Below are positions 8,067 through 58,103 of a stretch of DNA of 64,000 nt, piece by piece (the stretch's first letter is position 1; each line of letters begins with the position of its first letter). The notes under the pieces were generated by a model. The model did not search any database. It was not told the DNA's origin and saw nothing but the letters and a program-made list of their open reading frames with translations. The stretch lies in the sequence record KY555145.1. One strand, written 5' to 3'. The translations under genes and the position numbers were made by a program.

Positions 8067-8081
8067 GTCGTGAATCTTGAC
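8067..8081 (+). promoter_or_regulatory. Conserved phage promoter motif GTCGTGAATCTTGAC
   Basis: Intergenic, upstream of distal tail gene; one of about 11 copies. Confidence 0.7.
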
Positions 8082-8134
8082 GTTCCTGGATGATCGTGGC
8101 ATCCAGGGACACCTCCTTTCATGGTTAATGCCCG

Positions 8135-8785
8135 ATGCCGAGCTTCCACGACGTCCTGTTCCCCGAGACCATCAGCTACGGCTCGTCCGGTGGTCCGAAG
8201 TTCAAGACCACGATCTTCCAGGCCGACAGCGGCTTTGAGCAGCGCAACAAGGACTGGAGCGACATCCGCTGCGAGTACGATGTCGCCCAGTCGATCCGCT
8301 CGACCGAGGACATGGACGAGCTTCGCGCCTTCTTCATGGCCCGCAACGGCCGCGCCCACGGTTTCCGCTACAAGGACTGGGGCGACTTCCGCCTCAAGAA
8401 CCAGTTGATCGGCGTCGGCGACGGCGTCACCAAGGTCTTCCAGATCGTCAAGACCTATACCAGCGTCGCCCACGACGGCACCGAGTACACCTACACCCGC
8501 ACGATCCGCAAGCCCAAGTGGGACTCGATCGCCGGCGTCAAGGTCGGCGCCGTGGTTCAGGTCGCCCCGACCAACTACGAGGTCGACTATTCGACCGGCC
8601 TGATGACCTTCGTCACCGCGCCGCCGGCCGACGCCCCGGTCACCATTGGCCTGGGCGAGTTCCACGTCCCCGTCCGCTTCGACACCGACTTCATGGACGT
8701 CACCCAGGAGTTCTGGATGCGCGAGACGTGGCCCAACATCCCGATCGTCGAAATCCGTGACTGGCAAGAGGCCCTGACGCCGTGA
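8135..8785 (+). CDS. Distal tail protein (DUF2460 / GTA-like)
   Basis: FHDVLFP..ISYGSSGGP.F.T...SG.EQRN..W motif and C-terminal F.VPVRFDTD, typical of the family. Confidence 0.9.
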   Translation: MPSFHDVLFPETISYGSSGGPKFKTTIFQADSGFEQRNKDWSDIRCEYDVAQSIRSTEDMDELRAFFMARNGRAHGFRYKDWGDFRLKNQLIGVGDGVTKVFQIVKTYTSVAHDGTEYTYTRTIRKPKWDSIAGVKVGAVVQVAPTNYEVDYSTGLMTFVTAPPADAPVTIGLGEFHVPVRFDTDFMDVTQEFWMRETWPNIPIVEIRDWQEALTP

Positions 8786-10407
8786 AATCCGTCCCCGATG
8801 ACCTGATGGCGCACCTCCAGGAGGAGGTGACCACGCTCGCGACGTGCATCACGATCGTGCGCCAGGACGGCAAGGCGTTCTTCATGACCGACCACGATCG
8901 GCCGATCAAGTTCGAGAACCAGACCTACGTCCCCTACGACTCCTACCAGCGCACGTCGATCCTGATGTCGTCGGAACTGGAAGTCGACACCGCCGACATC
9001 ACCGCCTTCCTGACCTCGAACGGGGTGACGCGCGACGACGTGGCCTCGGGCCTGTTCGACTACGCCGCGATCAAGGTCCAGTTGCTGAACTACGAGCGGC
9101 CCGAGGACGGGGCGATCCTGCTCCGCAAGGGCACGTTCGGCGAAGTGACCATGAACCAGGACGAGACCTTCTCGGCCGAAATCCGGGGCATGACCCAGGT
9201 CCTGACCTACCGGGTCGGGGAGACCTACGCGCCCGAGTGCCGGGCCGACCTGGGCGATCGCCGCTGCAAGATCGGCCTGATGCCTGAGGAGTGGCAGGCC
9301 AACAAATACTACGGCCTCGACGCCTGCGTGCTGGGCGAACTCGTCGCCCCGACGTCGTTCGTCAATCCCGTGGTCGTCAACGGCAACTTCGAGGACGGCG
9401 CCCTCAACGCCGTCGTCACCGCGCCGACGGGCTGGGTGGCCTATGGCGATCCGACCAGCCGCTGGGTCTACAAGCACGACTGGTACAATCTGTCGCGCCC
9501 GCAGGTCGGCAACCAGTTCATCGCCGCCACCCGCACCTCGATCTCCGACAAGCAGGAAGTCGCGGGCATCTACCAGGACATCAACCTCGTCTCCGCCGGC
9601 GTGCCCGCCGCCGCGATCGACGGCGGCCTCTGCCGCGTGCGCTACAAGTCCTTCGCCGCCTGCCTCAACAACCGTGCCCAGTCGCGTGAGCGCCTGACCT
9701 GTATCAAGGCCGACGGCTCGGTGGAGACGATCTGGGACACCGGCGAGATCAAGTACCCCGAGGACCGCTGGATCGCGGTCAACGCCGACGACATCCTGAT
9801 CCCGGCCGGCACGCGCGTCCTACGCATCGACCTGTGGTCCAAGAAGCGCAGCGTCCACGAAGAGGGCGCGGCCTATGACGGGATCAGCCTGTCGATCAAC
9901 CTGCCGGCGGGCACGGCCGGCAACGCCCATGTCTATGGCGGGGTGATGTTCAAGTGCATCCAGGCGGGGATCAGCGGCGGCACCCAGCCGGCCTGGACCA
10001 ACGAACTGGGCGCCACCTATACCGACGGCACGGTCATCTGGCAGTGCGTGACCAACTACAAGAAGGTAGGCACGGTCGCCACGGTCGCCTCCAACAAGTC
10101 CTTCACCTCGACCGACATCACCGAGCCGGCCGGTCACTACGACGGCGGCGTGCTCTACTGGGAAACCGGCCGCAACGCCGGACGCGCCCAGGAGATCAAG
10201 ACCTGGGCCGCCAACCTCTTCACGCTTTTCCAGCGCACCTACTATCCAATCACGGCGGGCGACCGCTTCGTGGTCTATCCCGGCTGCGACAAGCGCCGCG
10301 CCACCTGTGCCGACAAGTTCCACAATATCCACAATTTCCGCGCCGAGCCCGACGTGCCCGGTCAGGACATCTACTACCGCACGCCCAACGCTCCGGAGCA
10401 GGAATGA
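8782..10407 (+). CDS. Tail hub/baseplate protein (DUF2163 / BR0599 GTA-like) with inserted domain
   Basis: N-terminal TTLATC..I.R.DG....TDHD and C-terminal GCDKR..TC..KF.N..NFRAEP motifs; about 200-aa insertion in the middle. Confidence 0.88.
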   Translation: MKSVPDDLMAHLQEEVTTLATCITIVRQDGKAFFMTDHDRPIKFENQTYVPYDSYQRTSILMSSELEVDTADITAFLTSNGVTRDDVASGLFDYAAIKVQLLNYERPEDGAILLRKGTFGEVTMNQDETFSAEIRGMTQVLTYRVGETYAPECRADLGDRRCKIGLMPEEWQANKYYGLDACVLGELVAPTSFVNPVVVNGNFEDGALNAVVTAPTGWVAYGDPTSRWVYKHDWYNLSRPQVGNQFIAATRTSISDKQEVAGIYQDINLVSAGVPAAAIDGGLCRVRYKSFAACLNNRAQSRERLTCIKADGSVETIWDTGEIKYPEDRWIAVNADDILIPAGTRVLRIDLWSKKRSVHEEGAAYDGISLSINLPAGTAGNAHVYGGVMFKCIQAGISGGTQPAWTNELGATYTDGTVIWQCVTNYKKVGTVATVASNKSFTSTDITEPAGHYDGGVLYWETGRNAGRAQEIKTWAANLFTLFQRTYYPITAGDRFVVYPGCDKRRATCADKFHNIHNFRAEPDVPGQDIYYRTPNAPEQE

Positions 10408-10829
10408 CCCGCGACGACATCGTGACCGAAGCGCGCCGCTATGTCGCGCTCCAAACCCCCTGGCGCCATCGAGGCCGCACCGAACGCGGCCTCGACTGCA
10501 TCGGGCTGGCCGTCATGATCTTCGAAAAGTTCAACCTGGAGTATATGGACCAGGACGGCTACGCGCGCACGCCCGACGGTGAGAAGTTCGTCGACGTGAT
10601 CCGCCAGCACATGACCCTGGCCGATCCGACCGCGCTTAAGCCGGGCATGCTGCTGTTGTTCAACGACGATGCCCGGCCCTGTCATGTCGGCATCCTGGCG
10701 CGCCAGCACGGGCGCCTGACCCTGATCCACGCGACCGCCGACAAGAAGCGGACGGTCGAGGAAGTCTATGACCGCCGCTATGCCGCCCGGTTCCGCATGG
10801 CCTTCGATTTTCCCGGCGTTGAGGACTAA
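10404..10829 (+). CDS. Tail-associated NlpC/P60 peptidase
   Basis: MTRDDIVTEARRY...WRHRGR...GLDCIGL...HVGI...IHA; ATGA overlap with the hub gene. Confidence 0.9.
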   Translation: MTRDDIVTEARRYVALQTPWRHRGRTERGLDCIGLAVMIFEKFNLEYMDQDGYARTPDGEKFVDVIRQHMTLADPTALKPGMLLLFNDDARPCHVGILARQHGRLTLIHATADKKRTVEEVYDRRYAARFRMAFDFPGVED

Positions 10830-10831
10830 TC

Positions 10832-13800: not shown

Positions 13801-14308
13801 CTCGATCGAGTTCCAGGCCGAGAACCTCGACACCTCGGGCCAGAACCGCTGGTATAAGGCCGTCGGCTCGGGCATGTCGCTGTTCGAGACCGATCCGATC
13901 CAGATCAATTACCAGCCCCGCGACCTCATGCCCTACCGCCCGGCCGACATCCGTCGGGCGGTCGCGGGCGGCGATGTCACCGTGACCTGGAAGCGTCGCA
14001 CGCGTTTCACGGCCACGCTCAAGGATGGCACCGGCGAAGTCAGCCTCAACGAGGGGACCGAAGCCTATGAGGCCTATGTCCTCGCCACGTCTTACGCGGG
14101 GGACCTGTCGCGTCAGGACGCGCCGGCCGTCTACCGCCGTAAATACACCCTGACGAGTCCGAGCTTCACCTACACGGCGGCCGAGCAGGCGGCCGACGGA
14201 TTTGACGTGAATCTTGACACTCTGCACGTGGTGATCTATCAGTTGAGTTCGGTTGTTGGTCGGGGTTTCCCCGGCGCGCGCTCGATTGAGTCCTGGCAGG
14301 ACTTCTAA
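10832..14308 (+). CDS. Central tail fibre / tip attachment protein (GTA megatron-like)
   Basis: 1158 aa; YG..IP..YGT.RVGGN.IW, PAYRGLCYVVF and GDEVLQF...LLRGRRGT motifs of Phage-tail_3 proteins. Confidence 0.9.
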   Translation: MAAAIALPIVSAIVSTAISYAFPSDGPRLRDTKVSASTYGNVIPEIYGTARVGGNMIWSKPFTEKKKKKRAGKGGSYYNEYTYYCDFAMAFCRGPVKEVRRIWADGKVIYDTTGGSEVIDNNKYRFRFYPGDETQLPDSLIVEDKGADYAPAYRGLCYVVFDDFALADFGNRIPQIMAEVYAGDEGGAAITDIVPLPSSPVTGGSYQLGQMMIDADRGYFYLVDSVSNPAGTVLRRFLLANGKEDRREIVSIPQTQFPPSVYDSPDLTSVRAVTSKGELLCVFGGINNYMRIEKLDPYSWQSLGTIGRSYPFAGTPENSLQHSNTNFEISRDDKGNYLCLTLGVFGEYNIFDPSDMSFKAKGEMAGWGGAGTPMYICARQGGSAASRRFYHVTYTGGASLQVCSLGEVLYNHPLDYPGNSQTASSWAFWDEGDPGVVFFYSDGPNRYIAKWSESTGVLAWKTQLRNSDPFCGYGVYGLRARIKDNEFHWVYNKHLFSINTATGQWIDRTFDQDFYKSDNDKTAEQVNDGDKGLLLPRDISEDYVIYDPRRNIVICVGQIQGQNGIVHVGGYTGGKTSVGAIVERLLVSTGQMTSNDYDLTPLYDIPVYGYGYASSTDIKSIIAELRNLFMFDLVESDGRLVARVRGDQDPDAEVPWKLLGSQSGPTPDKADYWKETRMSESDLPASIDLTYSNIDDDYNPSTAKSKRIASPVATMLSRQQVKAECNLVMDATEAKNRVNIMLYTQWEERTQHQTALPWLYANLDASDLISVTMEDGRNYFERIGSIEFGADFSSRLETYGTDSGAYLSDKTGDGGGAGRPTVVPAPKPVVGFILNTPLLRDTHDSGGNFSNWYSAIGAGAPGVFLGGTMFKSANSQDYVDLYQEPESAEWGTVMGAVPSPSHGWFALDWETRITITPAVDFFELESITDDELWEGLNLVMIGDEVLQFRDAVQNADGTWTIWNLLRGRRGTQYACDNHKAGERFLFLDERSIEFQAENLDTSGQNRWYKAVGSGMSLFETDPIQINYQPRDLMPYRPADIRRAVAGGDVTVTWKRRTRFTATLKDGTGEVSLNEGTEAYEAYVLATSYAGDLSRQDAPAVYRRKYTLTSPSFTYTAAEQAADGFDVNLDTLHVVIYQLSSVVGRGFPGARSIESWQDF
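14204..14218 (+). promoter_or_regulatory. Phage promoter motif copy (GACGTGAATCTTGAC) inside the 3' end of the tail tip gene
   Basis: One mismatch to consensus; positioned to drive the fibre genes. Confidence 0.55.
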
Positions 14309-14328
14309 GCCCCCTTTCCACAATCCCG

Positions 14329-14360: not shown

Positions 14361-14380
14361 GTCATAAAAGTCGTGGAACG

Positions 14381-19458: not shown

Positions 19459-19668
19459 ATGGCCGACGGAACGGCTCGCGTTACACAGGAGACGGTGGAG
19501 GTCATCTCCACCGGCCCCAAGCCCGTTCGCCTCACCCAGGAGACGGTGGAGATCATCTCGACCTCCAAGCGCCCCGCCCGTTTGACCCAGGTCACCTTGG
19601 AGGTGATCCGATCGGTCGGGGTCGCGGCGGAGCGCCCGCGTCGCCTCATCTTCATGCTCGGAGCCTGA
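19459..19668 (+). CDS. Small structural protein with triple repeat
   Basis: 69 aa, R(V/L)TQ(E/V)T(V/L)E(V/I)I three times; abuts both neighbours. Confidence 0.65.
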   Translation: MADGTARVTQETVEVISTGPKPVRLTQETVEIISTSKRPARLTQVTLEVIRSVGVAAERPRRLIFMLGA

Positions 19669-20763: not shown

Positions 20764-20778
20764 GTCGTGAATCTTGAC
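20764..20778 (+). promoter_or_regulatory. Phage promoter motif copy upstream of lysis cassette
   Basis: Exact GTCGTGAATCTTGAC followed by a CATAGT -10-like element. Confidence 0.7.
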
Positions 20779-20837
20779 ATCGGCATGTTTCCGGACCATA
20801 GTCAAGGCCTTGATTTTCAGCACTTCCGGAATTCCAC

Positions 20838-21479
20838 ATGCGTGTCTCCGACACCGGCCTGAAGCTGATCCAGGCCTGGGAAGGCCTCGGTGACGGGAAC
20901 CCCGCCACGGTCGACCTGGAGCCCTATGTCTGCCCGGCCAAGGTCTGGACGGTCGGTTGGGGGCACGCCCTGAAGACGCCGACCGGTCAGATCATCGACG
21001 TCGACGTCTTCGGCGCCGCCAGGGCCAAGGTCCTGGCGGCCGAATCCATGCAGCGCAAGTTCGGCAAGGGCGCGATCACCCGTGATCAGGCCGTCGCCCT
21101 GCTGCGCGAGGATGTCACCGGCTTCGAGCGCTCGGTCGACAAGATGATCGGCGCGGCCGGAGCCACTCAGGGTCAGTTCGACGCCCTGGTCTCGTTCGCC
21201 TTCAACTGCGGCTCGGCCAACCTCCAGTCCTCGACCCTCCTGCGCCTGCACAACGCCGGCAAGCGCGCGGTGGGCGACGTGTCGATGTCGGCGCTCTGCA
21301 AGGAGAGCAAGCTCTCCACGCCGATCGGTAACATCGCCGTGGCCTTCTCGCGTTGGAACAAGGTCAACAAGGTCTGGGCGCTGGGACTGTTCCGCCGCCG
21401 GCTGTCCGAAGTCCTGGTCTATGGCGGGCATAATCCCGACGAGGCGGTCAAGGCCGCCCAGGGCTTCAAGGGCTGCTGA
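20838..21479 (+). CDS. Endolysin, GH24 phage lysozyme
   Basis: LIQAWEG...YVCPAKVWTVGWGH catalytic region and QFDALVSFAFNCG, F.RWNK, GLFRRR motifs. Confidence 0.92.
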   Translation: MRVSDTGLKLIQAWEGLGDGNPATVDLEPYVCPAKVWTVGWGHALKTPTGQIIDVDVFGAARAKVLAAESMQRKFGKGAITRDQAVALLREDVTGFERSVDKMIGAAGATQGQFDALVSFAFNCGSANLQSSTLLRLHNAGKRAVGDVSMSALCKESKLSTPIGNIAVAFSRWNKVNKVWALGLFRRRLSEVLVYGGHNPDEAVKAAQGFKGC

Positions 21480-22878: not shown

Positions 22879-22911
22879 CACCCTGCGACATAACGTCGCA
22901 TGTCATGATCC

Positions 22912-22940
22912 TTGACAGAACGACGATCTTCGAGTATGGT
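22912..22940 (+). promoter_or_regulatory. Sigma70-type promoter TTGACA-N17-TATGGT
   Basis: Direct match; preceded by a degenerate copy of the phage motif (GTCATGATCCTTGAC). Confidence 0.7.
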
Positions 22941-22943
22941 CGC

Positions 22944-23238
22944 GGCTCTTCGACGGCATCCCACCGTCACCTATGGCTCGCGACCCACCGTTCGCAGGGA
23001 GATGCTCGCGACCAAGGCGGTAGCCGGAACGACGCTAGGCTGCAAAGCCAAGCCTCCGGAACACGCAGCAGCCGGCTGGAACGCTAGGCCGTTACGTCCA
23101 AACGGGGCCAGGACCTGTGAGGCGAAAGCCGAAAGGCCCCACCACCCGACAAGGGTTCACGCGTGATGCGGAAGAAGGACGTCAGTCCTGAAGTGTCTCA
23201 GGTGCAGAAGGCCCGCCGGTTTCCCGGCGGGCCTTTTT
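22944..23238 (+). ncRNA. Unassigned ~290-nt structured RNA candidate
   Basis: Bounded by a promoter and an intrinsic terminator, no credible ORF, many short hairpins including a GAAA tetraloop. Confidence 0.6.
23208..23238 (+). terminator. Intrinsic terminator
   Basis: AAGGCCCGCCGG/CCGGCGGGCCTT stem followed by TTTTT. Confidence 0.88.
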
Positions 23239-23257: not shown

Positions 23258-24058
23258 TTAGTCGACCGCTTCCAGGCGCCGGCGCTTGGGCGCGCTCGCC
23301 GGCAGGGACGGGGCCAGATCGCCGATCTTGCCGACCACCTTGCCGAGGAACACGATCCGCTTGGGATCGACGTCGACATGATCCTTCAGGTCGGCGCTAT
23401 AGACCCGGAACGCGCCGCCCTTGGAGGGACGGGTGACGTGCGCGACCTGCATGACCTTGTCCATGCCGTAGACGAACTCGCCGCCGGCGGCGCTGGGCTC
23501 TACATCGCGGCGGACCACCGCCATGTCGCCCGGCTTGAGACCAGGGGCGAAGTCGTGGATCGGGGCCAGGGCCAGATCGGTCGGCTCGGCCTCGAAGCGC
23601 TCGCGAAGCCAGTCGGGATCGAGGTTCCAGGTCCGGGCGCGCTTGAACTCGCCAAGGCGGCCTTTGAAGGTCACTTCCTCGACCGGGTTGGGCGCGCCGA
23701 CCCCGAAGGTGATGTATTCGGGCGTCGTCTTGAGGACGTGGGCGATCTGCTCCAGCACGTCGATGTGCGGCTTGACGCTGTCGGACTCGTACATGATGTA
23801 CGCCGTGCGCGCCAGCGGCCGGCGCTCGCCCGCCTGCTTCGGCTCCCAGCCCGGCTTGGTGCTGGTGTCCTTGCGCGAATTGCTCTGTTGGGTCAAGTAG
23901 ACCTGCGAGGCCACTTGCTCCTGAGTCAGGTCGAGGGCCTTCCGGCAGGCGGTGATCCGCTGCCCGATGGTCTGAGGATGCGCAAGATCGGCATCCTTGT
24001 GGATCAAGGAACGAGCGCGATGGGGCACCATCGGCTTCAGTTCGGCCACGGCTTGCAT
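23258..24058 (-). CDS. XRE-family HTH regulator with C-terminal S24-like domain
   Basis: TIGQRITACRKALDLTQEQVA...LEQIAHVLKTTPEYITFG helix-turn-helix; C-terminal GDMAVV...GKVVG as in CI-like repressors. Confidence 0.8.
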   Translation of the reverse strand: MQAVAELKPMVPHRARSLIHKDADLAHPQTIGQRITACRKALDLTQEQVASQVYLTQQSNSRKDTSTKPGWEPKQAGERRPLARTAYIMYESDSVKPHIDVLEQIAHVLKTTPEYITFGVGAPNPVEEVTFKGRLGEFKRARTWNLDPDWLRERFEAEPTDLALAPIHDFAPGLKPGDMAVVRRDVEPSAAGGEFVYGMDKVMQVAHVTRPSKGGAFRVYSADLKDHVDVDPKRIVFLGKVVGKIGDLAPSLPASAPKRRRLEAVD

Positions 24059-29232: not shown

Positions 29233-29338
29233 GGGGTCTCGTTCTCGCGTCGAGGCGCGATGCGTTAAAAAGCCCTGAGAAATCAGGGCCTTAGATTGAC
29301 AGCAAAGGATGGTTAAGATAGCCTGAGGGGTCCCGAAA

Positions 29339-29353
29339 GTCAAGATTCACGAC
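29339..29353 (-). promoter_or_regulatory. Phage promoter motif copy driving nrdA
   Basis: Reverse complement GTCGTGAATCTTGACT, then N15 and GCTATCTT. Confidence 0.7.
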
Positions 29354-29394
29354 ACTCGTGGACCCCTCAAAGATTCCTTGACAGCCCCTCGGAT

Positions 29395-30257: not shown

Positions 30258-30295
30258 GCTCGGCTCCGGTGATGTCGTGTCTCCTGACGATTGAT

Positions 30296-30310
30296 GTCAG
30301 GATTCACGAC
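30296..30310 (-). promoter_or_regulatory. Phage promoter motif copy (one mismatch)
   Basis: GTCAGGATTCACGAC on +, intergenic. Confidence 0.55.
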
Positions 30311-36360: not shown

Positions 36361-36408
36361 CGGGCGATCTCGTTCGGGAGTGTCTTGTTAACCAAGTTCC
36401 GGATGGGT

Positions 36409-36423
36409 GTCAAGATTCACGAC
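36409..36423 (-). promoter_or_regulatory. Phage promoter motif copy
   Basis: Exact reverse complement; TTGACA-N15-GTTAACAA on - strand. Confidence 0.7.
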
Positions 36424-36431
36424 ATAGAAAG

Positions 36432-37106
36432 TCACGAAGCACGACTCACGCCCTGGGCTTTGATGATCTCGTAGATACGCTGGGCCGACAGGCTGTAGGC
36501 CTCGGCCAGTTGCGCCACCGGCTCGCCCTTGGCGTAGCAGTCGGCGATCTCGGCGTAGAACCGCTTCTTGGCCTCCTCCCGGCGCAGCTTGGCGTCGGGG
36601 GCGTGGCGGTCGATGAAGCGGTAGATCGCGATCCGGCTGACCCCGTAGTCCTTGGCGATCAAGGGCACGGGCGCGAAGGCGGCGTAGCTTTCGATGATAT
36701 CGGCGGCGTGGTCGGCGAGGGCCATGGTGTTCTCCAGGAGGGCGAGAGCGCGGTCGATCACCACCGCCGCGCGCTTCGAGGGCTGTTTGGTCAGGAAGCC
36801 GCAGCGGCGGCCGACGGCGTAGGGCGGCTCCAGCCCTTCGCAGAGGTACTGGTCGGCGGTCGGGTCCGCGCGGTAGCCGCCGGCGGCCTCAAGCCACCAG
36901 TGGGTCCCGCCGTCGGGGTCGCGCCCGACCATCGGCCGCCAGCCGCCGTCCCAACCGTCCAGCAGATGCCAGAGCGCCTCGGAGGCGACATAGCAGTGCC
37001 CGGCGGTCGGGTTCGAAGCCGTGTACGCGGAACGATAGGGCTCGTGCAGAAGCTCGGGTGTGAGGCTCTTCTGGACCGCGATAAGGGTTTCGAGCGGCGC
37101 CTGCAT
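36432..37106 (-). CDS. Hypothetical protein with C-terminal HTH-like segments
   Basis: ATG at 37106 overlaps the polymerase stop; GHCYVASEAL..HWWL N-terminal block, IAKDYGVSRIAIYR and LAEAYSLSAQRIYEI HTH-like motifs. Confidence 0.7.
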   Translation of the reverse strand: MQAPLETLIAVQKSLTPELLHEPYRSAYTASNPTAGHCYVASEALWHLLDGWDGGWRPMVGRDPDGGTHWWLEAAGGYRADPTADQYLCEGLEPPYAVGRRCGFLTKQPSKRAAVVIDRALALLENTMALADHAADIIESYAAFAPVPLIAKDYGVSRIAIYRFIDRHAPDAKLRREEAKKRFYAEIADCYAKGEPVAQLAEAYSLSAQRIYEIIKAQGVSRAS

Positions 37107-39352
37107 CAGTGCGTCTCCGCCCAGGTGCGGCCCCACTTGACGTCGACATCGACCGGCAGGCGGAAATCGAACCGCTCACCGGCTTCCTTCGCCGCGTCGA
37201 CGATGTTGCGACGGCAGATTTCCTTGATCGCCGGATCATCGCGCACCGCCACCTGCATTTCGTCGTGGACCCAGGCCAGGACGGCGTAGTCGCCGTGCCA
37301 GCCATGGACGAGCCCGTCGTCTTCGTTGAAGGTCTCGAAGTTGACGCACCAGCCCTTGGCGATCGTGGCGCCGGCGCCCTGGAGCTTGGTGTTGAGGGCC
37401 GAGTGCTTGGCCCGGACGAAGAGATGGCGACCGTCGAGGGCGTCGACATAGCCGCGCTTGGCTTCGCGCTGGACGGACTTGACTACCTGTTGCAGCGCCG
37501 GGATGCGCGTCATGATCCGCCGCCGCATTTCCGAGCCCAGGGCCTTGGCCTTGGCGACGTTCATGGTCAGGGACGGGTCGACGGTGCAGCCCAGCTTGTA
37601 GTCCTGGGCGCCGTAGATCATGGCGTAGATGAAGGTCTTGGCGGTGTCGCGCGACTCCATCTCCATGGCCGCTTGGTGGACGCCGTGGACGTCGCCATCG
37701 AGCACGATCTTGCCGTACTGCCCGTTGTCGAACTCCGCCATGAAGTGGGCCAGACAGCGCAGTTCGATACCGGCTTGGTCGGCGCCCATCAGGGTCCAGC
37801 CCTCGGGGACGTAGAAGAGGTCGCGGCAGTCCCAGCCGTGATCGCCCTCGCGGCCCTTCATCAGGACCTTCTTGGTGACCACCTCGCCCTTTTCGTTCAG
37901 GGTGAACTCGCCCTCGGGCGTCAGCACCGGGCGACCCCGGATTTGCTTGCCGTCCGGGCCGAGCAGCGGGATCGTCTTGGCCTCGTCCTTCCACTGCGGC
38001 GGCGACTTGAAGACGACGCGAGGGACCTGGGCGATGTTGGGGTTGGAGTGCGAGGCCCGGTTGGTCACCGTGCCTCCGACATTGACGCGGCCGTGAATCT
38101 TGCCGTCGCCGTTCCACTCCTCGCACTTGACCAGCCAGCCGTTCTTGCCGTCGACCAACTGACCCAGGCGCTTCTTGTAGTAGAAGATTTCCGCCAGGGT
38201 CTCGCAGATCGGGATCACCAGCTTCTTGGTGTTCTCGTCCTCGGCCTTGGCCAGATCGCGCAGCACTTCGTCGTCCACCACTGGCGAGCCGGTTTCGGTG
38301 AACTCCTGGGGTTGCCAGCCATAGACCTTGGTCAGGCGGTCGATGATCTGCGGACGCGAGTTGGGGTTGAACTCGGTGATCTTGACCGGGCAGAAGGCCG
38401 CGCCGGCGGTGCGGTCGCCCTTCATCGGGTCCTTGTACTTGACATCGCGCGTCGGGACCGTCACCTCGGCCCAGTGCTCGCGGCTGTCGTCCTCGCCGAA
38501 TTCGGGGCGCGGCTTGTAGGCGACCTGATCCTTCTCGGGCTTGCCGGTCTCGGGCGAGGTGTAGGTGGTCGACTTGTGGCGCTTGAGCCACTTGCCCGGC
38601 ACCCACCAGGAGCCGAAATGGGCGATCGCCTCGTCCGACATCTTGGTGTGCGCCGTGCGCAGTTCTTCTTCCAGGCGACGCGCGCGCTCGCGGTGGAACG
38701 GGAAGCCGTTGCGCTGCACCCGCTCCATCATGTCGTGGATCATGTGTTCGAGCGTGATCGCGGTCTTGGACCACGGCCGGCTCTCGATCTTGCGCCACAG
38801 GGCCTCGGTGACCTCGACGTCCTGGATCGCGTAGTCTTCCATGTCCTGGTTCCAGGACCCCCAGACGTACTTGCTGATCTCGGCCTTGTCGGTGATGCCC
38901 TTGGCCTTGGCCTCTTCCTCGGCCACGTCGGCGTAGTCGCCCTTGGGGAAGCCCAGGCGCTGGCCCCAGGCGCCCAGTTCGTGCGAGCCGATGTAGCCGC
39001 CCCACAGGTCGCCGCGCTTCCACATCCGGAAGTCGTCGTCCTTGAGGTCGGCGAACAGCATGCGCGTCATCACCAGGGTGTCGCGGATGATCCCCTGGGG
39101 ATTGAACTTGTTGCCATAGACCTTCCACAGGGCCTCGCAGTCGAAGCCGATGATGTTGTGGCCGATCAGCATGTCGGCGTCGTTCAGCATCGCGACGCCT
39201 TCGAGGATGTTGTCCTCGCGCTTGTTGCGGTGGAAGACCCAACGCTGACGGGTGTCGGCGTCCTTGATCACCAGGATGTGGATGCGCGTCAGTTGCAGCA
39301 GCAGCCCGTCGGTTTCAAGGTCGAACAGGAGCCGGCGCTTACGGAGCTTCAT
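37106..39352 (-). CDS. T7-like family A DNA polymerase
   Basis: FDLETDGL exonuclease, GHNIIGFD, DGKIHG, SHSNPNIAQVP, GADQAGIELRCLAH, AKTFIYA..YGA, VHDEMQ. Confidence 0.96.
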   Translation of the reverse strand: MKLRKRRLLFDLETDGLLLQLTRIHILVIKDADTRQRWVFHRNKREDNILEGVAMLNDADMLIGHNIIGFDCEALWKVYGNKFNPQGIIRDTLVMTRMLFADLKDDDFRMWKRGDLWGGYIGSHELGAWGQRLGFPKGDYADVAEEEAKAKGITDKAEISKYVWGSWNQDMEDYAIQDVEVTEALWRKIESRPWSKTAITLEHMIHDMMERVQRNGFPFHRERARRLEEELRTAHTKMSDEAIAHFGSWWVPGKWLKRHKSTTYTSPETGKPEKDQVAYKPRPEFGEDDSREHWAEVTVPTRDVKYKDPMKGDRTAGAAFCPVKITEFNPNSRPQIIDRLTKVYGWQPQEFTETGSPVVDDEVLRDLAKAEDENTKKLVIPICETLAEIFYYKKRLGQLVDGKNGWLVKCEEWNGDGKIHGRVNVGGTVTNRASHSNPNIAQVPRVVFKSPPQWKDEAKTIPLLGPDGKQIRGRPVLTPEGEFTLNEKGEVVTKKVLMKGREGDHGWDCRDLFYVPEGWTLMGADQAGIELRCLAHFMAEFDNGQYGKIVLDGDVHGVHQAAMEMESRDTAKTFIYAMIYGAQDYKLGCTVDPSLTMNVAKAKALGSEMRRRIMTRIPALQQVVKSVQREAKRGYVDALDGRHLFVRAKHSALNTKLQGAGATIAKGWCVNFETFNEDDGLVHGWHGDYAVLAWVHDEMQVAVRDDPAIKEICRRNIVDAAKEAGERFDFRLPVDVDVKWGRTWAETH

Positions 39353-40397
39353 GGAGCACCTTGAGGATTTGATCGCCGATCCAGTCCACCATCGGGACGA
39401 TCAGGCTGTTGCCGACGATGGTCCGGCGCTCGGTGTCCGAGAGCCCTTCGATCGCGGTGTGGCCGACGGGCATGCCCATCAGGCGCTCGTACTCGGACAC
39501 GGTGTGATTGCGGATGCGCCAGTCCTCGCCTTCCTTGACGAGCAGCATGGCGACGCTGGAGCCGCCGCCGGCCGTGCGCAGGCAGTTGGCGATTACGCCG
39601 CGCTCTTCGATTTGCTGGTCGGGGCGACCGCGAACAGCGAGGGATCGAGCCCGTGGGACAGGGCGGCCGTCAATTCCGGCGACAAGGTCCGACCGGCCCG
39701 GATCGCGTTGTTCAGGAGGGTCAAACGCCGGGACGGGCTCATGTACAATCCGGCGGGGATCGATTCCGGAGCGTCGAGTACACGCGACAAGCACAAGCCG
39801 GGGGCGGGACTGGGGGATTCCGAACTGGGGGCCGTCGAAGACCGTCCAGGCAATCGCGCGGCGCGGTCCCAGCACATAACCACAGTCCGGCCACCGATGC
39901 CCTGCCGCGTCGTCGTCACCTTCGGGCTTTCCGTAGGGATAGAGGGGTTCTCGCTCGCCGGCGAGGCGTCCGAGGAATTGTCCAAAGGCGTTGTCCTTGT
40001 TGGAGAGGAGCTTGACCACATTCTCGAAACAGAAGATCGGAGGATCGACCTCGTCGATCACCCTCAGGCCCGAGAGCGTCAGTTGTCCGCGCGGGTCGGC
40101 CAGACCCAGGCCCTTGCCGGCCTCGCTCCACGGCTGGCAGGGGAACGACGCCCACAGGACGTCGACCTTGCCCTCGTGGGGCGTGCCGTCGATCTGTTCG
40201 AGGTTCCCGAGGTTCGGGACGGTCTTCCAGTGCGTCTCCAGGAGACGGATCGGGGCCGAGGCGATCTCGCTGAAGAAGCGGGCCTTGCCGCCCTTCTTCT
40301 CCCACGCCACCGAGGGGACGTCGGCGCCGGAGCAAAGGGTCGCAAAGACCCACGGCGTGACGCCGGAGGCGTCCGCAGGGGAGGGGTTCGGGGACAT
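39339..40397 (-). CDS. C5 DNA cytosine methyltransferase (orphan)
   Basis: SFPCQ.WS (motif IV), FENV (VI), FG.PQ.RPR (VIII), R..VGNS (X). Confidence 0.9.
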   Translation of the reverse strand: MSPNPSPADASGVTPWVFATLCSGADVPSVAWEKKGGKARFFSEIASAPIRLLETHWKTVPNLGNLEQIDGTPHEGKVDVLWASFPCQPWSEAGKGLGLADPRGQLTLSGLRVIDEVDPPIFCFENVVKLLSNKDNAFGQFLGRLAGEREPLYPYGKPEGDDDAAGHRWPDCGYVLGPRRAIAWTVFDGPQFGIPQSRPRLVLVACTRRSGIDPRRIVHEPVPAFDPPEQRDPGRSDLVAGIDGRPVPRARSLAVRGRPDQQIEERGVIANCLRTAGGGSSVAMLLVKEGEDWRIRNHTVSEYERLMGMPVGHTAIEGLSDTERRTIVGNSLIVPMVDWIGDQILKVLHEAP

Positions 40398-40416: not shown

Positions 40417-40434
40417 GTCGTGAATCACGTCAAG
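40417..40434 (-). promoter_or_regulatory. Promoter with phage motif variant (TTGACG-N15-GTTAACCA on - strand)
   Basis: GTCGTGAATCACGTCAAG on +. Confidence 0.6.
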
Positions 40435-41251: not shown

Positions 41252-42955
41252 TTACAGGCGCCAGTGGCGGCCGTTGAAGGTGATCAGCGCCCGCTTGCCA
41301 TTCGGGTACTGCACGCAGTGGGTATGCGCCCAGGACGAGGGGCCGGTGTTGTAGCCCATGTCCAGCTTCGAGGTCGTGCCGGTGTTGTAGGCGCTCTCGA
41401 AAATGCCGGGCGAGTGGGTGTGACCGAACGTCACCTTCGGGCCGATCTTGGCGAACTGCTGGATGTTGCCGCGCGAGCCGTTGGCGCCGTTGTGGCCGTG
41501 GTTGGAGTGCTCGACCCCGCCAACGACGCAGGTCTCGTCCTCGCGCAGGAACTTCACGCCGTTGCAGTTCCAGACGTCGAAGGCGTTAGTCATCACCTCC
41601 TCGAAGATCGAGAAGTTCTTCTCGCCGGTCCGGATCGAGGCGTAGACCGCCCGCTGGCAGGTCAGGAAGAACTCGGCGTTGACCGGGTCGGCGCGGTAGT
41701 CGGCCGTCTTCAGCCACTTGTTGAGCGCCAGATCGTGGTTGCTCTCGACCACCGTGACCTTCGAGTCCGGTGCCTGCCGGCCCAGAATGGTCAGGAACAT
41801 CGCCACCTCGCGCAGTTCCTGTTCGACGCTTTCAGAGCCCTTGACATAGAGCCGGAAGCGGTCGTGCGGATCGGCGATGTTGTGGTGGTTGCGTGCCCGG
41901 AAGTCGGACACGTCATGGACGAAGATGTGCTCGGGGCGCAGGACGTCGACCATCGACGGCGTCGCCACGCTGCCCCACACCCGGCTCCCGTCGGCCGAGC
42001 GTTGCTCGGTCGGGAAGAAACCGAAGGTGGCGGCCGAGACCTCCGGGTCGATCTGGGCGACGTGGATGTCCCCCGGCGTCAGGCAGGACACGCGATGGCC
42101 CTCGGTCACCACGCCGTCCTTGACGAACACGTCCAGATCGTAGAACGACCCGTCGGTGTCGCCCAGCAGGTGGCGGCAGAAGAACTTGCCGTCCTCGTCG
42201 ACCTCGACCAGCACCGCGCCCAGTTGGTGGTGGAAGCTGGCCTTGATCCCGGCCTTCTTCGGCACGTAGTTGGGCTTGGTGACCGCGCCCGTCGTCATGA
42301 TCTGCTTGGACGGGGTGTGCTTCATCGTCGGGACGCTGACGAGTTGCACCTTGGCGTGCGGGAAGATGCCCCAGCGCTCACGGGTGTAGGAGTGGAAGCC
42401 CGACAGCGGGTTCTCGGCCGTGGGGAGGGTGTTCATCTCGCCGCAGAAGTCGATCCGGTCGGCGATCCGCACGCGCTCGGCGACGAGGTATTCCATCACC
42501 CGCTTGTGGAAGAACGCCGCGTGCTTGGCGTGGTCCTCGAACAGGCGCTTGGAGTAGGTGAAGCCGGCGATCATGATCTCGCACGGCGCGTCCCGGCGCA
42601 GGTGCTCGGCATAGGCTTCCAGGTTGTCGACGAACCCCTCGTGGATGTGCGTCGAGTCCTGGGCCGAGGACAGGATGAACCGCCGGCGCCCGGTGGTCTC
42701 GTCCACCGTCACAGTCCGCGCGGCCGGGGCCGGGCGGTGCGACAGCGGGTCTTTGCGCATCGAGTAGAGCCGGTTTTGCAGGGTCGTGCGCTTGACGCTG
42801 TACTTGCGCGAGAACGCCCGTTGACCGCCGGCCTTCTTGACCATCGCGTTCAGTTCTTCCGGGGTCACCGAGTAGATGTCGAAGGGACCCTCGGCCGGCA
42901 AGGCGTCCTTGGGCTTCTTGCCCGCCTTGGAAGCGTGTTCGAACTCAGCCGGCAT
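41252..42955 (-). CDS. T5 A1-like protein / metallophosphoesterase-fold nuclease
   Basis: Start MPAEF at 42955; RFILSSAQ, TTGAVT..NY...KAG..A.FHH.LGA, GDIH, HD, SNHD, GHTHS motifs. Family assignment is from recalled similarity. Confidence 0.7.
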   Translation of the reverse strand: MPAEFEHASKAGKKPKDALPAEGPFDIYSVTPEELNAMVKKAGGQRAFSRKYSVKRTTLQNRLYSMRKDPLSHRPAPAARTVTVDETTGRRRFILSSAQDSTHIHEGFVDNLEAYAEHLRRDAPCEIMIAGFTYSKRLFEDHAKHAAFFHKRVMEYLVAERVRIADRIDFCGEMNTLPTAENPLSGFHSYTRERWGIFPHAKVQLVSVPTMKHTPSKQIMTTGAVTKPNYVPKKAGIKASFHHQLGAVLVEVDEDGKFFCRHLLGDTDGSFYDLDVFVKDGVVTEGHRVSCLTPGDIHVAQIDPEVSAATFGFFPTEQRSADGSRVWGSVATPSMVDVLRPEHIFVHDVSDFRARNHHNIADPHDRFRLYVKGSESVEQELREVAMFLTILGRQAPDSKVTVVESNHDLALNKWLKTADYRADPVNAEFFLTCQRAVYASIRTGEKNFSIFEEVMTNAFDVWNCNGVKFLREDETCVVGGVEHSNHGHNGANGSRGNIQQFAKIGPKVTFGHTHSPGIFESAYNTGTTSKLDMGYNTGPSSWAHTHCVQYPNGKRALITFNGRHWRL

Positions 42956-43646
42956 AGAGCAACTCCGGTTTGGCGCTGACCGGCTTGGACCAATCCCAGA
43001 CGTACCAAGCATAGGCGAAGCGCGGGGCGCCCTTGGTGCCGGCGATCCAGCGAGGGCGGTGGCGAAGGGTGACCTTCGCGGTGAAGGCGGGGTGATCGAA
43101 CAGGTCCTTGCGCGAGCGCGCGGCGTCCCATTCGTGGCGGCAGAGGAAGGCGACGAGGCCCTGATCGGCCTCCATCAGCGACAGCGCGTGGCGCGCGGCG
43201 CGCTCGGCGTCCTTGCCGTAGGGCGGGTTGGTGATGATGGCGTCGGGACGCGGCGGCAGCGGCGTGGGCTTGCGCTCCTCGCCCTTCTCATCGACGATGG
43301 TTTCGGGCCGGGCCTTCAGCGCGCCCAGGCGGTCGAGGTCCGCCGGCGTCAGCTTGAAGAAGTCCTCCACCGCGTCCACCTCGAAACCCTCGTAGCGGTG
43401 GATGTCCGTGGAGAGGACCTCCTGCACGAAGGGCTTGAGCGGCGTGGCGATCGCGCCGTTGCCCGCGAAGGGCTCCCAGGCGAAGAACGGGGCGAAGTCG
43501 TCGCCCAGGGCCTCGATCAGGGCGTCGAAGGCCGGCCGAGGAGTCGGGTAAAAGTCCAGCGGGGTCCTGGCATATCCGGAGGCGCCCAGCATGGAGGGGT
43601 CTTTGCGACCAGCATCGGAGAGAGACATGGTCGTGAGGGATGTCAT
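42945..43646 (-). CDS. Small amino-methyltransferase (m6A/m4C type)
   Basis: DFYPTP, WEPFAGNGAI (motif I), IITNPPY (motif IV). Confidence 0.85.
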   Translation of the reverse strand: MTSLTTMSLSDAGRKDPSMLGASGYARTPLDFYPTPRPAFDALIEALGDDFAPFFAWEPFAGNGAIATPLKPFVQEVLSTDIHRYEGFEVDAVEDFFKLTPADLDRLGALKARPETIVDEKGEERKPTPLPPRPDAIITNPPYGKDAERAARHALSLMEADQGLVAFLCRHEWDAARSRKDLFDHPAFTAKVTLRHRPRWIAGTKGAPRFAYAWYVWDWSKPVSAKPELLYAG

Positions 43647-43660: not shown

Positions 43661-43675
43661 GTCAAGATTCACGAC
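43661..43675 (-). promoter_or_regulatory. Phage promoter motif copy
   Basis: Exact GTCAAGATTCACGAC, back-to-back with the promoter of the large ncRNA. Confidence 0.65.
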
Positions 43676-43676
43676 A

Positions 43677-43705
43677 TTGACTGTCGTGAGCCACCACGCT
43701 AGACA
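43677..43705 (+). promoter_or_regulatory. Caulobacter sigma73-type promoter TTGACT-N15-GCTAGACA
   Basis: Matches TTGAC...GCTANAWC housekeeping consensus. Confidence 0.75.
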
Positions 43706-44687: not shown

Positions 44688-45560
44688 CCGACGGGCTGAG
44701 ACTACACCCATCAGCAATCCCGCTTCGAGGATTATTCCCCAGGTGCGACCCCAGGTATTCCCTCGACGTCCACCAGACCCCTTGCGGTAGTCCAGTCCGA
44801 GATCATCGCCGCCGTTCTTGCGCACCCCGAAGGGATTGCGGGTCTGGCGTTTGACCCATCATGGCGAACTACTCGACAGTTCCTTCCCCGCTGGGCTTGC
44901 GACCCACTCACCGGCGCTAACCGGCTGACGAAGCTCTTCCTATCGACACCTCGCGGGCTTGCGACCCTTGAGATGACTCCGTTACCCGAGGGCCGGAGCA
45001 TTTGGCGACTTACGTCCGCCACTGGACCAGTCTTTGCGTTTTTCATCGAAGCGGGGATTGAACCCGCGACCGACAGCTAGGACGGCTGTTGCACTACCAC
45101 TGTGCTATTCGCAAACCCACCAAGACGTGCTGGTCCAGTTGTTCCCAGAGCTTTTGACCCCAGAAATGCAACACGCCTCATATCTTTCGCCTTGCGGGCT
45201 ACTCGACTGCTCTTCAGGACCCCGTCTCCCCCGACCTTTCGGCCAGGATGCCCAGCACCCCTCGAACTGAAGCAAAGCTCTTCACCGCGAAGTGTCGAAC
45301 CCTGCAACCCAAACGGTTATCCGTACTCCCTAGACACGCTTGCACGGGATAGTCCGCTTGCGACGGACTGGCGGTTAAAGCCTCGGAGTTACCCCGGCCC
45401 CGCCTTGTCTCCCACGGTCTTCAGGTCTATCCCCTTTTGCAAGAGGCGGCCAGCTTCCCAGCCCGGACCCGTCGGCTTCCTCTGTCCTCTTGCGAGGTCG
45501 GGCGGCCTATGGGAGACCGTCCCTGTCACCCCGTCGCCGGGGCTTTCGTCAGAAGCGACG
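44688..45560 (-). ncRNA. GOLLD-like giant ornate RNA (~870 nt)
   Basis: On - strand: GAGTAGCCCGCAAGGCGAAAGATATGAGGCGTGTTGCATT...CAAAAG, a second GAGTAGTT, many GCAA/GAAA tetraloops and 3' GGGTGTAGTCTCAGCCC, all resembling recalled GOLLD consensus; flanked by promoter and terminator. Confidence 0.75.
45043..45114 (-). pseudogene. tRNA-like element embedded in GOLLD-like RNA
   Basis: Intact D arm (GCAC/GTGC), anticodon stem (ACAGC/GCTGT, loop CGTCCTA) and T arm (GCGGG-TTCAATC-CCCGC), but only a 4-bp acceptor stem and no CCA. Confidence 0.75.
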
Positions 45561-45681: not shown

Positions 45682-46058
45682 GAAAATCGTTGTAATTCGG
45701 ACAACGGAACTGGCGGCAAGACAGGGGTGCGAATCCCCTCGCCTCCACCATCGACGCCCGGCGCTGGGAGTACGCGACTCCTGGGCAGGGAGTGTTACCC
45801 TGGCGGGCTGCGGCCCGAGCCAAAGGTAGCCGGGCGTCGTTGATGGGGGCGACTAGCTTTCGATTGGCGCTCGGGACTGAAAGACGCAACGGTGGGTGAC
45901 CTCCACATCGGCTTGCCGGTGATCGGGTCAGGCAACAGTAAATGTCGCCGACAATGACAACGACGTCGTGGCTTTCGCCTCGGCTCGTGAAGCCATCGCC
46001 GCCTAATAAGCGGTAGAGGAGCCCGCCGGGAGCTTGGCAACAGAATCCCGGCAACCCC
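45682..46058 (+). ncRNA. ssrA: Circularly permuted two-piece tmRNA
   Basis: Acceptor piece ends AGGGG-TGCGAAT-CCCCT-CGCCTCC-A-CCA (45750); coding piece starts GGGGGCG (45845), giving a G3.U70 pair; resume context AACAGTAAATGTC-GCC; tag frame 45947-46006 encodes ADNDNDVVAFASAREAIAA-stop-stop; 3' GGCAACAGAA motif. Confidence 0.92.
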
Positions 46059-46628: not shown

Positions 46629-46637
46629 CCCACCTTT

Positions 46638-49639: not shown

Positions 49640-49654
49640 GTCAAGATTCATGAC
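49640..49654 (-). promoter_or_regulatory. Phage promoter motif copy in divergent promoter region
   Basis: GTCAAGATTCATGAC on +. Confidence 0.65.
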
Positions 49655-53431: not shown

Positions 53432-53452
53432 GGTCGTCTCCTTGAGACCGGC

Positions 53453-55576: not shown

Positions 55577-55620
55577 GGCAAACTCCGAAAGGCAGGCTTG
55601 AGTGAATGTGTTGCCGATCC

Positions 55621-55648
55621 TTCTAGCGAGGCGTTCTGGCTCTGTCAA
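55621..55648 (-). promoter_or_regulatory. Promoter TTGACA-N15-GCTAGAAG for rIIA
   Basis: Matches housekeeping consensus on - strand. Confidence 0.7.
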
Positions 55649-55669
55649 CACACTCCAGCCTGCCGGGAT

Positions 55670-55684
55670 GTCGTGAATCTTGAC
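55670..55684 (+). promoter_or_regulatory. Phage promoter motif copy
   Basis: Exact GTCGTGAATCTTGAC; next five bases (GTTCC) are identical to the 8067 copy. Confidence 0.7.
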
Positions 55685-55703
55685 GTTCCGCGACGCCTGA
55701 GGC

Positions 55704-55955
55704 ATGCTCGTATTCATGCGGAACATCACGGCTGAAGCGACGGGCAAGACCCGCACTTGCACGTCCGAGGATTATCCCTGGCCCCCGCGCGGGTCCGAGG
55801 GATGCGATTGCATGGAAAAGTCCAGCAACCCCAAGCGTGACTTCATGCTGATCGCCGACCGCACCGGTGTAATCGTATGGTACGCGAGGATGACATGCCC
55901 GATTCACGGCCCGAAGATCAAGACGTCGGACGTCGCAACCGAATCCACGACCTGA
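55704..55955 (+). CDS. Hypothetical protein
   Basis: 83 aa; CDC and CPIHG motifs; start uncertain. Confidence 0.5.
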   Translation: MLVFMRNITAEATGKTRTCTSEDYPWPPRGSEGCDCMEKSSNPKRDFMLIADRTGVIVWYARMTCPIHGPKIKTSDVATESTT

Positions 55956-56673: not shown

Positions 56674-56752
56674 CATTTTGTTGGCGTTCGAGGGTTGACA
56701 GCCCGGATTTCATGACTTAGATGCCTCCTCAACGACAACGAAGGAGGCTCTC

Positions 56753-57379: not shown

Positions 57380-57388
57380 GAGGGCGCG

Positions 57389-57802
57389 ATGACCTATGTC
57401 TGCACCACCGAGACCGACGAGATCATCAACGCCCAGCCCGTTGATCTGGACGCGGCCGAGGCCCTGCTGCGTCCGCGTCCGAACTTCGCCAAGGCCAGGG
57501 GCGTCTGCCGCGAGTGCGGCGCGCCCAAGAACGAACGGCGCCTGGGTGCGGACTTCTGCTCGACCCGCTGCCGCTCGGACTTCCACAACCGGGCCAAGAT
57601 CGAGGGCGCGTCGCTGATCCACATCGTCAAGCGCTGGCGGCGCTATCGTCGCCCTGGCGACTTCGCCTTGATGACCAAGATGGCGGATGACCTGATCCGC
57701 GCCGACAAGCTCGCCAACCGCAGCTTCTATCCCGACCCGCCGGCCACGGCTCACGCCAAGGTCGTCGCCACCAACATCGCCGGGCGCCGCAAGGCCCGTT
57801 AG
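57389..57802 (+). CDS. Hypothetical protein with Zn-finger
   Basis: CRECG...FCSTRCR motif; GGAGGG RBS. Confidence 0.75.
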   Translation: MTYVCTTETDEIINAQPVDLDAAEALLRPRPNFAKARGVCRECGAPKNERRLGADFCSTRCRSDFHNRAKIEGASLIHIVKRWRRYRRPGDFALMTKMADDLIRADKLANRSFYPDPPATAHAKVVATNIAGRRKAR

Positions 57803-57816
57803 TCCAGGAGTACAGT

Positions 57817-58071
57817 TTGACCACACCGAACCAAGCCCCCGTCCACACCGTCGAGAGCGGTGGTCACCTCTTCCAGGTCTATGCGGCCCCGGAGAACCAC
57901 ACCCACCGCTACCTCGGCTATTGCGACGGGGCGATCAGCGTCAGCGGCTCCAGCGTTGACGTCGTTCTGCGGGCCTTGGTGACCAAACATCCGGCGGTGC
58001 GGCCCAGCGGCGAGGTGATCGATTTCACCGCCTATCGCCTCAAACGCCTGGGCGAGGAATTCGCCGCCTGA
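57817..58071 (+). CDS. Hypothetical protein
   Basis: 84 aa, AGGAG RBS, TTG start. Confidence 0.65.
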   Translation: MTTPNQAPVHTVESGGHLFQVYAAPENHTHRYLGYCDGAISVSGSSVDVVLRALVTKHPAVRPSGEVIDFTAYRLKRLGEEFAA

Positions 58072-58088
58072 CGTCGTGATTTAACACT

Positions 58089-58103
58089 GTCATGAATCTT
58101 GAC
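58089..58103 (+). promoter_or_regulatory. Phage promoter motif copy upstream of primase
   Basis: GTCATGAATCTTGACA then N16 and GCTAGATG. Confidence 0.7.

Follow-up and report, generated by a model that had tools for sequence, protein, structure and literature searches.

The 15-mer promoters and the genes behind them

The 64-kb stretch of DNA analysed here ('the window', to which coordinates refer unless they are marked as genomic) matches bases 56993-120992 of Caulobacter phage Ccr10 (KY555142.1) with 100% identity, Ccr10 being a phiCbK-like Shapirovirus that shares ~96% identity with phiCbK. The window carries repeated copies of a 15-mer, GTCRTGAATCTTGAC, which was counted over the full 219-kb Ccr10 genome besides the window itself; alignment of 21 sites found genome-wide gives atGTCGTGAATCTTGACAt and defines the 15-mer promoter class that we denote type A. 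The promoters are read from sequence only, and their starts are predicted from the geometry of the -35 and -10 elements; four RNA runs that contain the phage, all of them assembled contigs, gave flat depth.

On the plus strand, an exact copy at 8067-8081 has a predicted start near 8112, just ahead of gp093 (start 8135); the copy at 14204-14218 (GACGTGAATCTTGAC) lies in the 3' end of gp096 and faces gp097 (start 14381); the one at 20764-20778 (TTGACA-17-CATAGT) stands before the lysis cassette, with the lysozyme gene gp101 at 20838; the one at 55670-55684 has its predicted start at about the ATG of gp137 (55716), so that the gp137 mRNA may be leaderless; and the one at 58089-58103, with the -10 region GCTAGAT, precedes gp143 (start 58163). 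On the minus strand, 29339-29353 (TTGACT-17-TATCTT) precedes the gene for ribonucleotide reductase alpha, gp109c (start 29232), and has been aligned in five phages, 30296-30310 is a variant with CTGAC upstream of gp112c (start 30257), 36409-36423 precedes the Pol III-type exonuclease gene gp118c (start 36360), 43661-43675 precedes gp125c (N6A methylase, start 43592) and the A1-like gene gp124c, and 49640-49654 precedes the helicase gene gp129c (start 49588). A further plus-strand variant without GANTC, GTCATGATCCTTGAC at 22902-22916 (TTGACA-17-TATGGT), stands before a conserved non-coding stretch at 22917-23238.

That the motif is real is evident from its frequency: at two or fewer mismatches GTCRTGAATCTTGAC has 12 matches in the window where 0.22 are expected, and none of 100 shuffles reached 12. 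An earlier sequence-only reading of this DNA had listed eleven positions, ten of which (all those named above except 22902) match at zero or one mismatch, whereas the eleventh, 40417, has three mismatches and another architecture (see below). Two matches were absent from that list, namely 22902 (+) and 38090 (+). The latter (38090-38104, two mismatches) is probably no promoter, lying antisense within the DNA polymerase gene and being conserved as coding sequence in the phages CcrRogue and Bajun. The same reading had called the motif genome-wide, which has to be narrowed: apart from one at 203.4 kb, sites with at most one mismatch are limited to genome positions 19.5-115 kb, with none at 120-200 kb; the region up to 115 kb contains structural, tRNA, lysis and nucleotide/replication modules. 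When the exact 15-mer was searched for in IMG/VR, contigs with multiple matches were all phiCbK-like and ~220 kb in length, while single matches occurred at chance level.

Several observations support the view that these sites are sigma70-type promoters. All ten good sites (those with zero or one mismatch) face a downstream gene, as had been proposed, with a same-strand start 31-162 nt away. Their intergenic location holds for eight of the ten by annotation, the two others being 14204, within gp096, and 55670, within the annotated start of rIIA. TTGAC is present in 20 of the 21 type A sites genome-wide and is followed by A in most of them. Downstream, A is found 20 nt after TTGAC in 15 of 21 sites (P 5e-8), and the position 24 nt past TTGAC is occupied by T in 14 (P 6e-7), corresponding to -11A and -7T of a hexamer yAnnnT at a 17-bp spacer. 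The -10-like element noted previously is hence present but weak, and the distance of 15-16 nt then given for it fits a point two bases before the hexamer, in keeping with the Caulobacter form GCTANAWC. In this geometry TTGAC occupies -35 to -31, the 15-mer -45 to -31, and the centre of GANTC falls at about -38. Besides 8112, it predicts starts at 20809, 22947, 29308, 36378, 43630, 49609, 55715 and 58134. An independent scan of 19 kb with the sigma70 consensus returned three sites, all of which are motif sites (20764, 22902 and 29339). In comparison with CcrRogue, which is 84% identical to Ccr10 overall, the 15-mer is 99% identical, the next 30 bases are 85-89% identical and the outer flanks 63-68%, so that a conserved block (85-99% identical) extends from -45 to about -5. 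Orientation, -35/-10 geometry and conservation thus support the proposal that sigma70-type promoters stand before structural, lysis, tRNA and nucleotide/replication genes.

A second promoter family, GTGTTGACA-N16-GCTAGAAG or, in full, cTGGCg-N4-GTGTTGACAa-N16-GCTAGAAG-N8-CGACGACAAC-GGAGG, occurs in 22 copies, all at 112-200 kb of the genome in a block of small genes. Both families use TTGACA. The -10 of this early family is, however, much stronger than that of type A, and the family lacks the type A upstream element. Within the window, early-type promoter elements GTGTTGAC are found at 55644-55651 (-), for rIIA/rIIB and back to back with the type A promoter at 55670, and at 62301-62308 (+), before gp145. 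For the main sigma factor of Caulobacter, sigma73, the consensus is TTGACGS, 10-14 nt, GCTANAWC. The early family fits it almost perfectly and looks like a set of plain host promoters; type A shares the -35 box and the spacing but adds ten invariant upstream bases and has a much weaker -10. In the searchable literature we found neither Ccr10 family previously described, and the same holds for promoters of phiCbK.

Some further features lie beside these promoters. The CAAC core of the early-family leader CGACGACAAC resembles the published weight matrix of TgrL, a phage XRE regulator; accordingly, the phage's own early promoters may be targets of TgrL. As a reader of the 15-mer, TgrL was rejected, the CAAC(C) core of its matrix failing to fit the motif. 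The annotated start of rIIA (gp136c) at 55705 overlaps the divergent type A promoter and is probably wrong, the true start lying further downstream, because the early-type promoter of rIIA itself lies downstream of it. The stretch at 22917-23238 (+), located between the lysis cassette and gp106c, is a conserved non-coding unit of ~330 nt, beginning at the promoter at 22902 and ending with a terminator at 23210-23238; it is kept in CcrRogue and partly in Bajun, and it matches no Rfam family. The leader of the ribonucleotide reductase alpha gene contains a stem-loop followed by a T run (AAGGCCCTGATTTCTCAGGGCTTTTT; 29267-29292, -), which five phages from three lineages share and which may serve as an attenuator. 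The 15-mer of the same gene (nrdA) is preceded, at a distance of ~20 bp, by GTCAAGGAATC at 29372-29382 (-), which is conserved in the Ccr10 and CcrColossus lineages and contains a second GANTC plus a TTGAC on the opposite strand.

The dyad, its half-site and its candidate readers

The type A element consists of two parts, the GTCGTG half-site and AATCTTGAC. As a whole, the 15-mer is a half-degenerate dyad, GTCGTGA-A-TCTTGAC as compared with an ideal GTCGTGA-N-TCACGAC, which is framed by GTC-N9-GAC, is symmetric at 10 of its 15 positions, and abuts or overlaps the -35 box. A near-perfect palindrome (type B; GTCGTGAATCACGtC) is found at 40417-40433 (-), between the minus-strand TTGAC (40429-40433) and the -10 region of a promoter that precedes an open reading frame (ORF) for a C5-methylase, the DNA polymerase gene and gp119c, its outer GAC being the GAC of that TTGAC. 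Another near-perfect palindrome is located at genome position 137264, just downstream of an early promoter. Moreover, four of the 21 type A promoters have another 15-bp site at a distance of exactly 22 bp upstream (P 1e-6), as at 36431-36445 (-; GTCGTGCTTCGTGAC) upstream of the 36409 site and at 43683-43697 (-; GTGGTGGCTCACGAC) upstream of the 43661 site, both without GANTC, and one promoter has such a site 22 bp downstream (30274-30288, -, over the -10 region of the 30296 site). GTCrTG..CAyGAC is preserved in these second sites, whereas GANTC is present in just one of the five. The C5-methylase ORF behind the 40417 palindrome (39339-40397, -) is itself of note, being an intact frame of 352 codons with the C5-cytosine methylase PCQ motif and orthologous to CcrRogue gp121, where the Ccr10 record annotates just two small ORFs.

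Comparison across the subfamily separates the two parts of the element. AWTC-TTGAC is shared by all, and the 5-7 bases further upstream vary by lineage: GTCGTG is the half-site of Shapirovirus and Poindextervirus (including Ccr10 and CcrRogue) as well as of Bajun, GCCAG(G) that of CcrColossus and CcrPW, which have their own palindromes GCCAGGAATCCTGGC, GTGACGC that of CcrSC, TGTyG that of Kikimora and TGCCG that of Domovoi. When these were cross-tabulated, each half-site was enriched in its own lineage only, with 6-9 copies versus 0.1-0.3 expected. Likewise, in the alignment of the nrdA promoter from five phages, GAATCTTGAC through to the -10 is common to all, and the difference resides in GTCGTG versus GCCAGG. 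C. crescentus is the host of Ccr10, CcrColossus and CcrSC alike, and Brevundimonas pondensis that of Kikimora and Domovoi. Since lineages on the same host differ in their half-site, whatever reads it follows the phage and not the host.

These patterns bear on the simplest account, in which no dedicated factor exists, the upstream bases provide an extended -35 or UP-like contact for the host polymerase, and the dyad is coincidental. The occurrence of AWTC-TTGAC in all lineages examined and of TTGACA in both promoter families would agree with such an account. However, the bases upstream of AWTC differ between phages on one host, palindromes and 22-bp tandem copies exist where there is no -35 box, and the early family of the same phage manages without the element, so that we consider this account very unlikely.

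On balance, we hold it to be somewhat probable instead that in type A a -35 box has been joined to the operator of a regulator encoded by the phage, and that this fusion forms the upstream half of one of the two promoter families. Positions 11-15 of the 15-mer (TTGAC, usually followed by A) would then be an ordinary -35 box for the main sigma factor of the host, from which a 17-bp spacer and the weak -10 (yAnnnT) would lead to a start ~31 nt after TTGAC. Positions 1-10 (GTCGTGAATC) would constitute the outer half and the centre of the operator GTCGTGA-N-TCACGAC, the inner half of which would have been replaced by the -35 box. A phage-encoded helix-turn-helix protein, probably a dimer, would bind this operator: at -45 to -31, as in the 21 type A sites of the genome, it would most likely aid RNA polymerase in the manner of a class II activator, and where a full palindrome is placed in the spacer (40417) or just past an early promoter (genome 137264), it would most likely repress. 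That a protein binds here, that the phage encodes it, that it activates and when it does so, we infer from the arrangement of the sites.

Precedents for such an arrangement exist. Class II activator-dependent phage promoters include those served by Mor and C of Mu (middle and late), by lambda CI at OR2 (PRM) and by lambda CII at PRE. There, a dyad or repeat site for a phage helix-turn-helix protein adjoins or overlaps the -35 of a sigma70 promoter whose core contains a weak element, neighbouring cooperative sites lie about two helical turns away, and the same protein can repress elsewhere, much as is envisaged for type A. The Ccr10 promoters differ from these systems in that (i) a perfect TTGACA replaces the inner half-site, (ii) the activator is represented by candidates only, and (iii) the centre of the dyad is near -38, as compared with -42 to -43.5 for class II positions. 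The middle promoters of T4 offer a second parallel, a phage-specific upstream element marking a non-early class that is used by the host polymerase. In T4, however, the MotA box at -30 replaces the -35 box and acts together with sigma appropriation by AsiA, whereas in Ccr10 the canonical TTGACA is retained and the extra element is placed upstream of it, which sets type A apart from MotA-type promoters.

The strength of the core bears on whether the putative regulator would help or hinder. One may envisage constitutive strong promoters for which host polymerase suffices, and a phage protein that blocks them at GTCGTGA..GAC, thereby delaying or shutting off the genes behind. The operator covers all five bases of TTGAC; the 22-bp tandem sites, in conjunction with the CI/LexA-like protein gp106c (see below), are reminiscent of lambdoid repressor-operator systems; and the sites at 40417, 30274 and genome 137264 are likely at repressing positions. 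The -35 of type A is indeed the consensus, but its -10 is much weaker than that of the early family, suggesting that the promoters may need help. In addition, a repressor operator would be expected to retain both half-sites more often, whereas the inner half is always replaced by TTGAC, and the constant register relative to the -35 box, seen in every lineage, better fits a contact with polymerase. We consider repression as the general mode of action at type A sites unlikely, and return to the fusion of a -35 box with the operator of an activator.

Three helix-turn-helix proteins encoded near the sites are candidates for the regulator. The first, gp119c (36432-37106, -), has two tandem helix-turn-helix units at its C-terminus and a weak Pfam Mor match; in tblastn searches its homologues appeared only in the lineages with GTCGTG, with a short distant relative in Bajun. 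It belongs to the operon behind the 40417 palindrome, whose placement would fit autoregulation. The second, gp106c (23258-24058, -), combines HTH_3 with a C-terminal domain of CI/LexA type and occurs in every lineage examined. The third, gp124c (41252-42955, -), is similar to A1 of phage T5 and has an N-terminal helix-turn-helix, the recognition helix of which (KRTTLQNRLY) is invariant among Ccr10, CcrRogue and Bajun, whereas CcrColossus and CcrSC have a different one. T5 A1 co-purifies with RNA polymerase, as related by Gill et al. (PMC3556154).

A number of points weigh against an activator fused to the -35 box, or against its individual candidates. A perfect-consensus -35 box is unusual for an activator-dependent promoter, and it would have to share DNA with the inner subunit of the dimer. 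Conservation of the central AAT is far higher in type A sites than in the distal ones, a difference that the idea of an operator alone leaves unexplained. For gp119c, the Pfam Mor match is marginal (25.9 bits versus a cut-off of 24.9), no sequence match to solved structures was obtained, and an AlphaFold model built from two sequences is confident only for the C-terminal helices, with Foldseek matches to generic helix-turn-helix folds at E >0.5. The recognition helix of gp106c tracks the half-site only in part, Bajun being the exception, and near-identical A1-like helices accompany different half-sites in Kikimora, Domovoi and CcrColossus. Finally, published RNA-seq of phiCbK classes ~41% of the genes as early, those for replication among them, and places structural and lysis genes in the middle or late class (PMC10688885). 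Type A sites stand before genes of both kinds, so that they mark no single clean temporal class.

GANTC, CcrM and GcrA

The centre of the type A dyad usually contains GANTC, the site methylated by CcrM, which abuts TTGAC in 20 of the 21 sites genome-wide, as the sequence-only reading had noticed. Counts confirm that this is conspicuous. The window contains 92 GANTC sites, where 205 are expected from base composition and 350 from dinucleotides; for the genome the figures are 277 observed, 655 expected from base composition and 1104 from dinucleotides (first-order Markov). Of the eight palindromes with this base composition, none is depleted as strongly as GANTC, which reaches about one quarter of the dinucleotide expectation. 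The depletion is strongest in the early region (observed/expected 0.17). Since GANTC is otherwise depleted and nine of the 18 intergenic sites among the 92 in the window are motif sites, the latter do stand out against their background.

It is thus tempting to speculate, as that reading did, that the promoters are coupled to methylation: CcrM would methylate GANTC beside the -35 box, and host or phage GcrA would activate, tying phage genes to the cell cycle of the host. Apart from the retention of GANTC in nearly all type A sites of a strongly depleted genome, and its concentration at these sites among the intergenic copies of the window, such a model can draw on a GcrA homologue encoded by the phage itself (genome 162384-162932, -), which retains the sigma-binding zinc-finger domain. 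Within the phage collection, GcrA homologues are confined to Shapirovirus and Poindextervirus, the two lineages in which GANTC is near-invariant. The phage promoters also resemble the GcrA/CcrM promoters of Caulobacter in being sigma70 promoters with GANTC near the core (PMC4647560, PMC5887438, PMC9976885).

Position, flanking context, dispensability and lineage pattern all speak otherwise. First, GcrA boxes have their centres at -20+-1 or -30+-2, or else lie at +5 to +30, and none is found further upstream, which has been ascribed by the authors to the length of the GcrA linker (PMC9976885). The GANTC of the phage, centred at about -38 when starts are inferred from -35/-10 geometry, lies outside these positions, that is, upstream of the -35 box rather than in the spacer or downstream of the start. 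Second, GcrA prefers YGAKTCK, and AGATTCA ranks 32nd of 32 NGANTCN contexts and has been used to abolish binding (PMC4647560); the phage sequence TGAATCT is the reverse complement of precisely this context. Third, GANTC is dispensable in conserved promoters. The promoter at 22902, which is among those with the best -10 hexamers, reads GATCC in Ccr10 and in its CcrRogue counterpart (16557) and CGATC in Bajun; the Bajun orthologue of 14204 reads GTCGCCATTCTTGAC, with CATTC in place of GANTC; and four weaker Ccr10 variants with good -10 regions likewise lack it. The frequency of GANTC falls from 20/21 in Ccr10 to ~5/10 in Bajun, 4/9 in CcrColossus and 2/8 in CcrSC, and to about none in Kikimora and Domovoi. 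Fourth, GcrA acts as a monomer, whereas the phage element is a dyad with tandem copies.

The phage homologue does not readily rescue the model. Four of the seven residues by which host GcrA contacts bases or the methyl group are changed (R33K, N34S, I37C and H41D), suggesting that the protein may combine sigma binding with an altered DNA specificity, or with none. As a reader of GTCGTG it was rejected: the Brevundimonas phage Bajun has the exact 15-mer at orthologous promoters and encodes no GcrA homologue. The co-occurrence of near-invariant GANTC with a phage GcrA counts as one observation, because the two lineages form a single clade. Taken together, we regard coupling through CcrM and GcrA as quite improbable.

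The GANTC inside the motif is probably a by-product and not a control point, arising because G is the last base of the half-site and directly precedes AWTC, which is kept before TTGAC in every related lineage. By the converse reading, the centre of the dyad would be a CcrM site by design, at which a phage regulator, or the diverged phage GcrA at an unusual upstream position, acts in dependence on methylation. We give this little credence. If it were true, phage DNA that has just been replicated and is unmethylated would not be read in the same way as DNA that is incoming or methylated by the host, and the non-early genes would be coupled to phage DNA replication or to the stage of the host cell cycle.

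Directly behind the type A promoter at 43661, gp125c (42945-43592, -) encodes a small amino-methyltransferase, with FAGNG followed by NPPY and a match to PHROG 'DNA methyltransferase' (E 1e-51). The phage may thus methylate adenines itself.

GTTAAC boxes and the host cell cycle

A different sequence offers a more plausible connection to the cell cycle. GTTAAC occurs 30 times in the genome as compared with 8.8 copies expected, and 19 of these lie in the terminal repeat, for which CtrA sites have already been described (PMC9437464). Of the 11 copies outside the repeat, eight follow a type A 15-mer by no more than 60 nt (P 9e-12), the 40417 promoter contains another, and a further copy sits just upstream of 49640, so that ten of the 11 are tied to these promoters. 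The boxes (GTTAACCAT; SciP/CtrA-type, cGTTAACCAyG), which are 8-32 nt downstream of the -35 boxes in many type A promoters, are located at 36387, 40407, 43648, 49603 and 49667 in the window and at 19525, 22491, 25570, 47461 and 203494 in genome coordinates. Their consensus matches the box (G/A)TTAACCAT(A/G) of SciP, a swarmer-cell repressor. The SciP box contains half a CtrA box (PMC4083442), and it is swarmer cells that the phage infects (PMC3556154). Judging from these sequence matches, a link to the cell cycle via SciP/CtrA-type boxes appears more plausible than one via GcrA and CcrM.

Two further features of the window belong to the tRNA island of the phage, where Rfam searches identified a GOLLD RNA at 44693-45179 (-; 165 bits, the gathering score being 150), which encloses a tRNA, as well as a permuted tmRNA at 45688-46006 (+; 72 bits).

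In the Caulobacter cell-cycle model phiCbK serves as the standard phage, which lends value to a working map of promoters for this group. As it stands, this map comprises a plain, host-like early family, a family of 21 sites with the putative operator, and SciP/CtrA-type boxes beside many of the latter. Promoters of the second class stand before the structural, lysis, tRNA and replication modules. Judged by sequence rules, a GcrA/CcrM model for the timing of phage genes is disfavoured. Finally, the lineage-specific half-sites are natural material for swaps by which the regulator may be identified.

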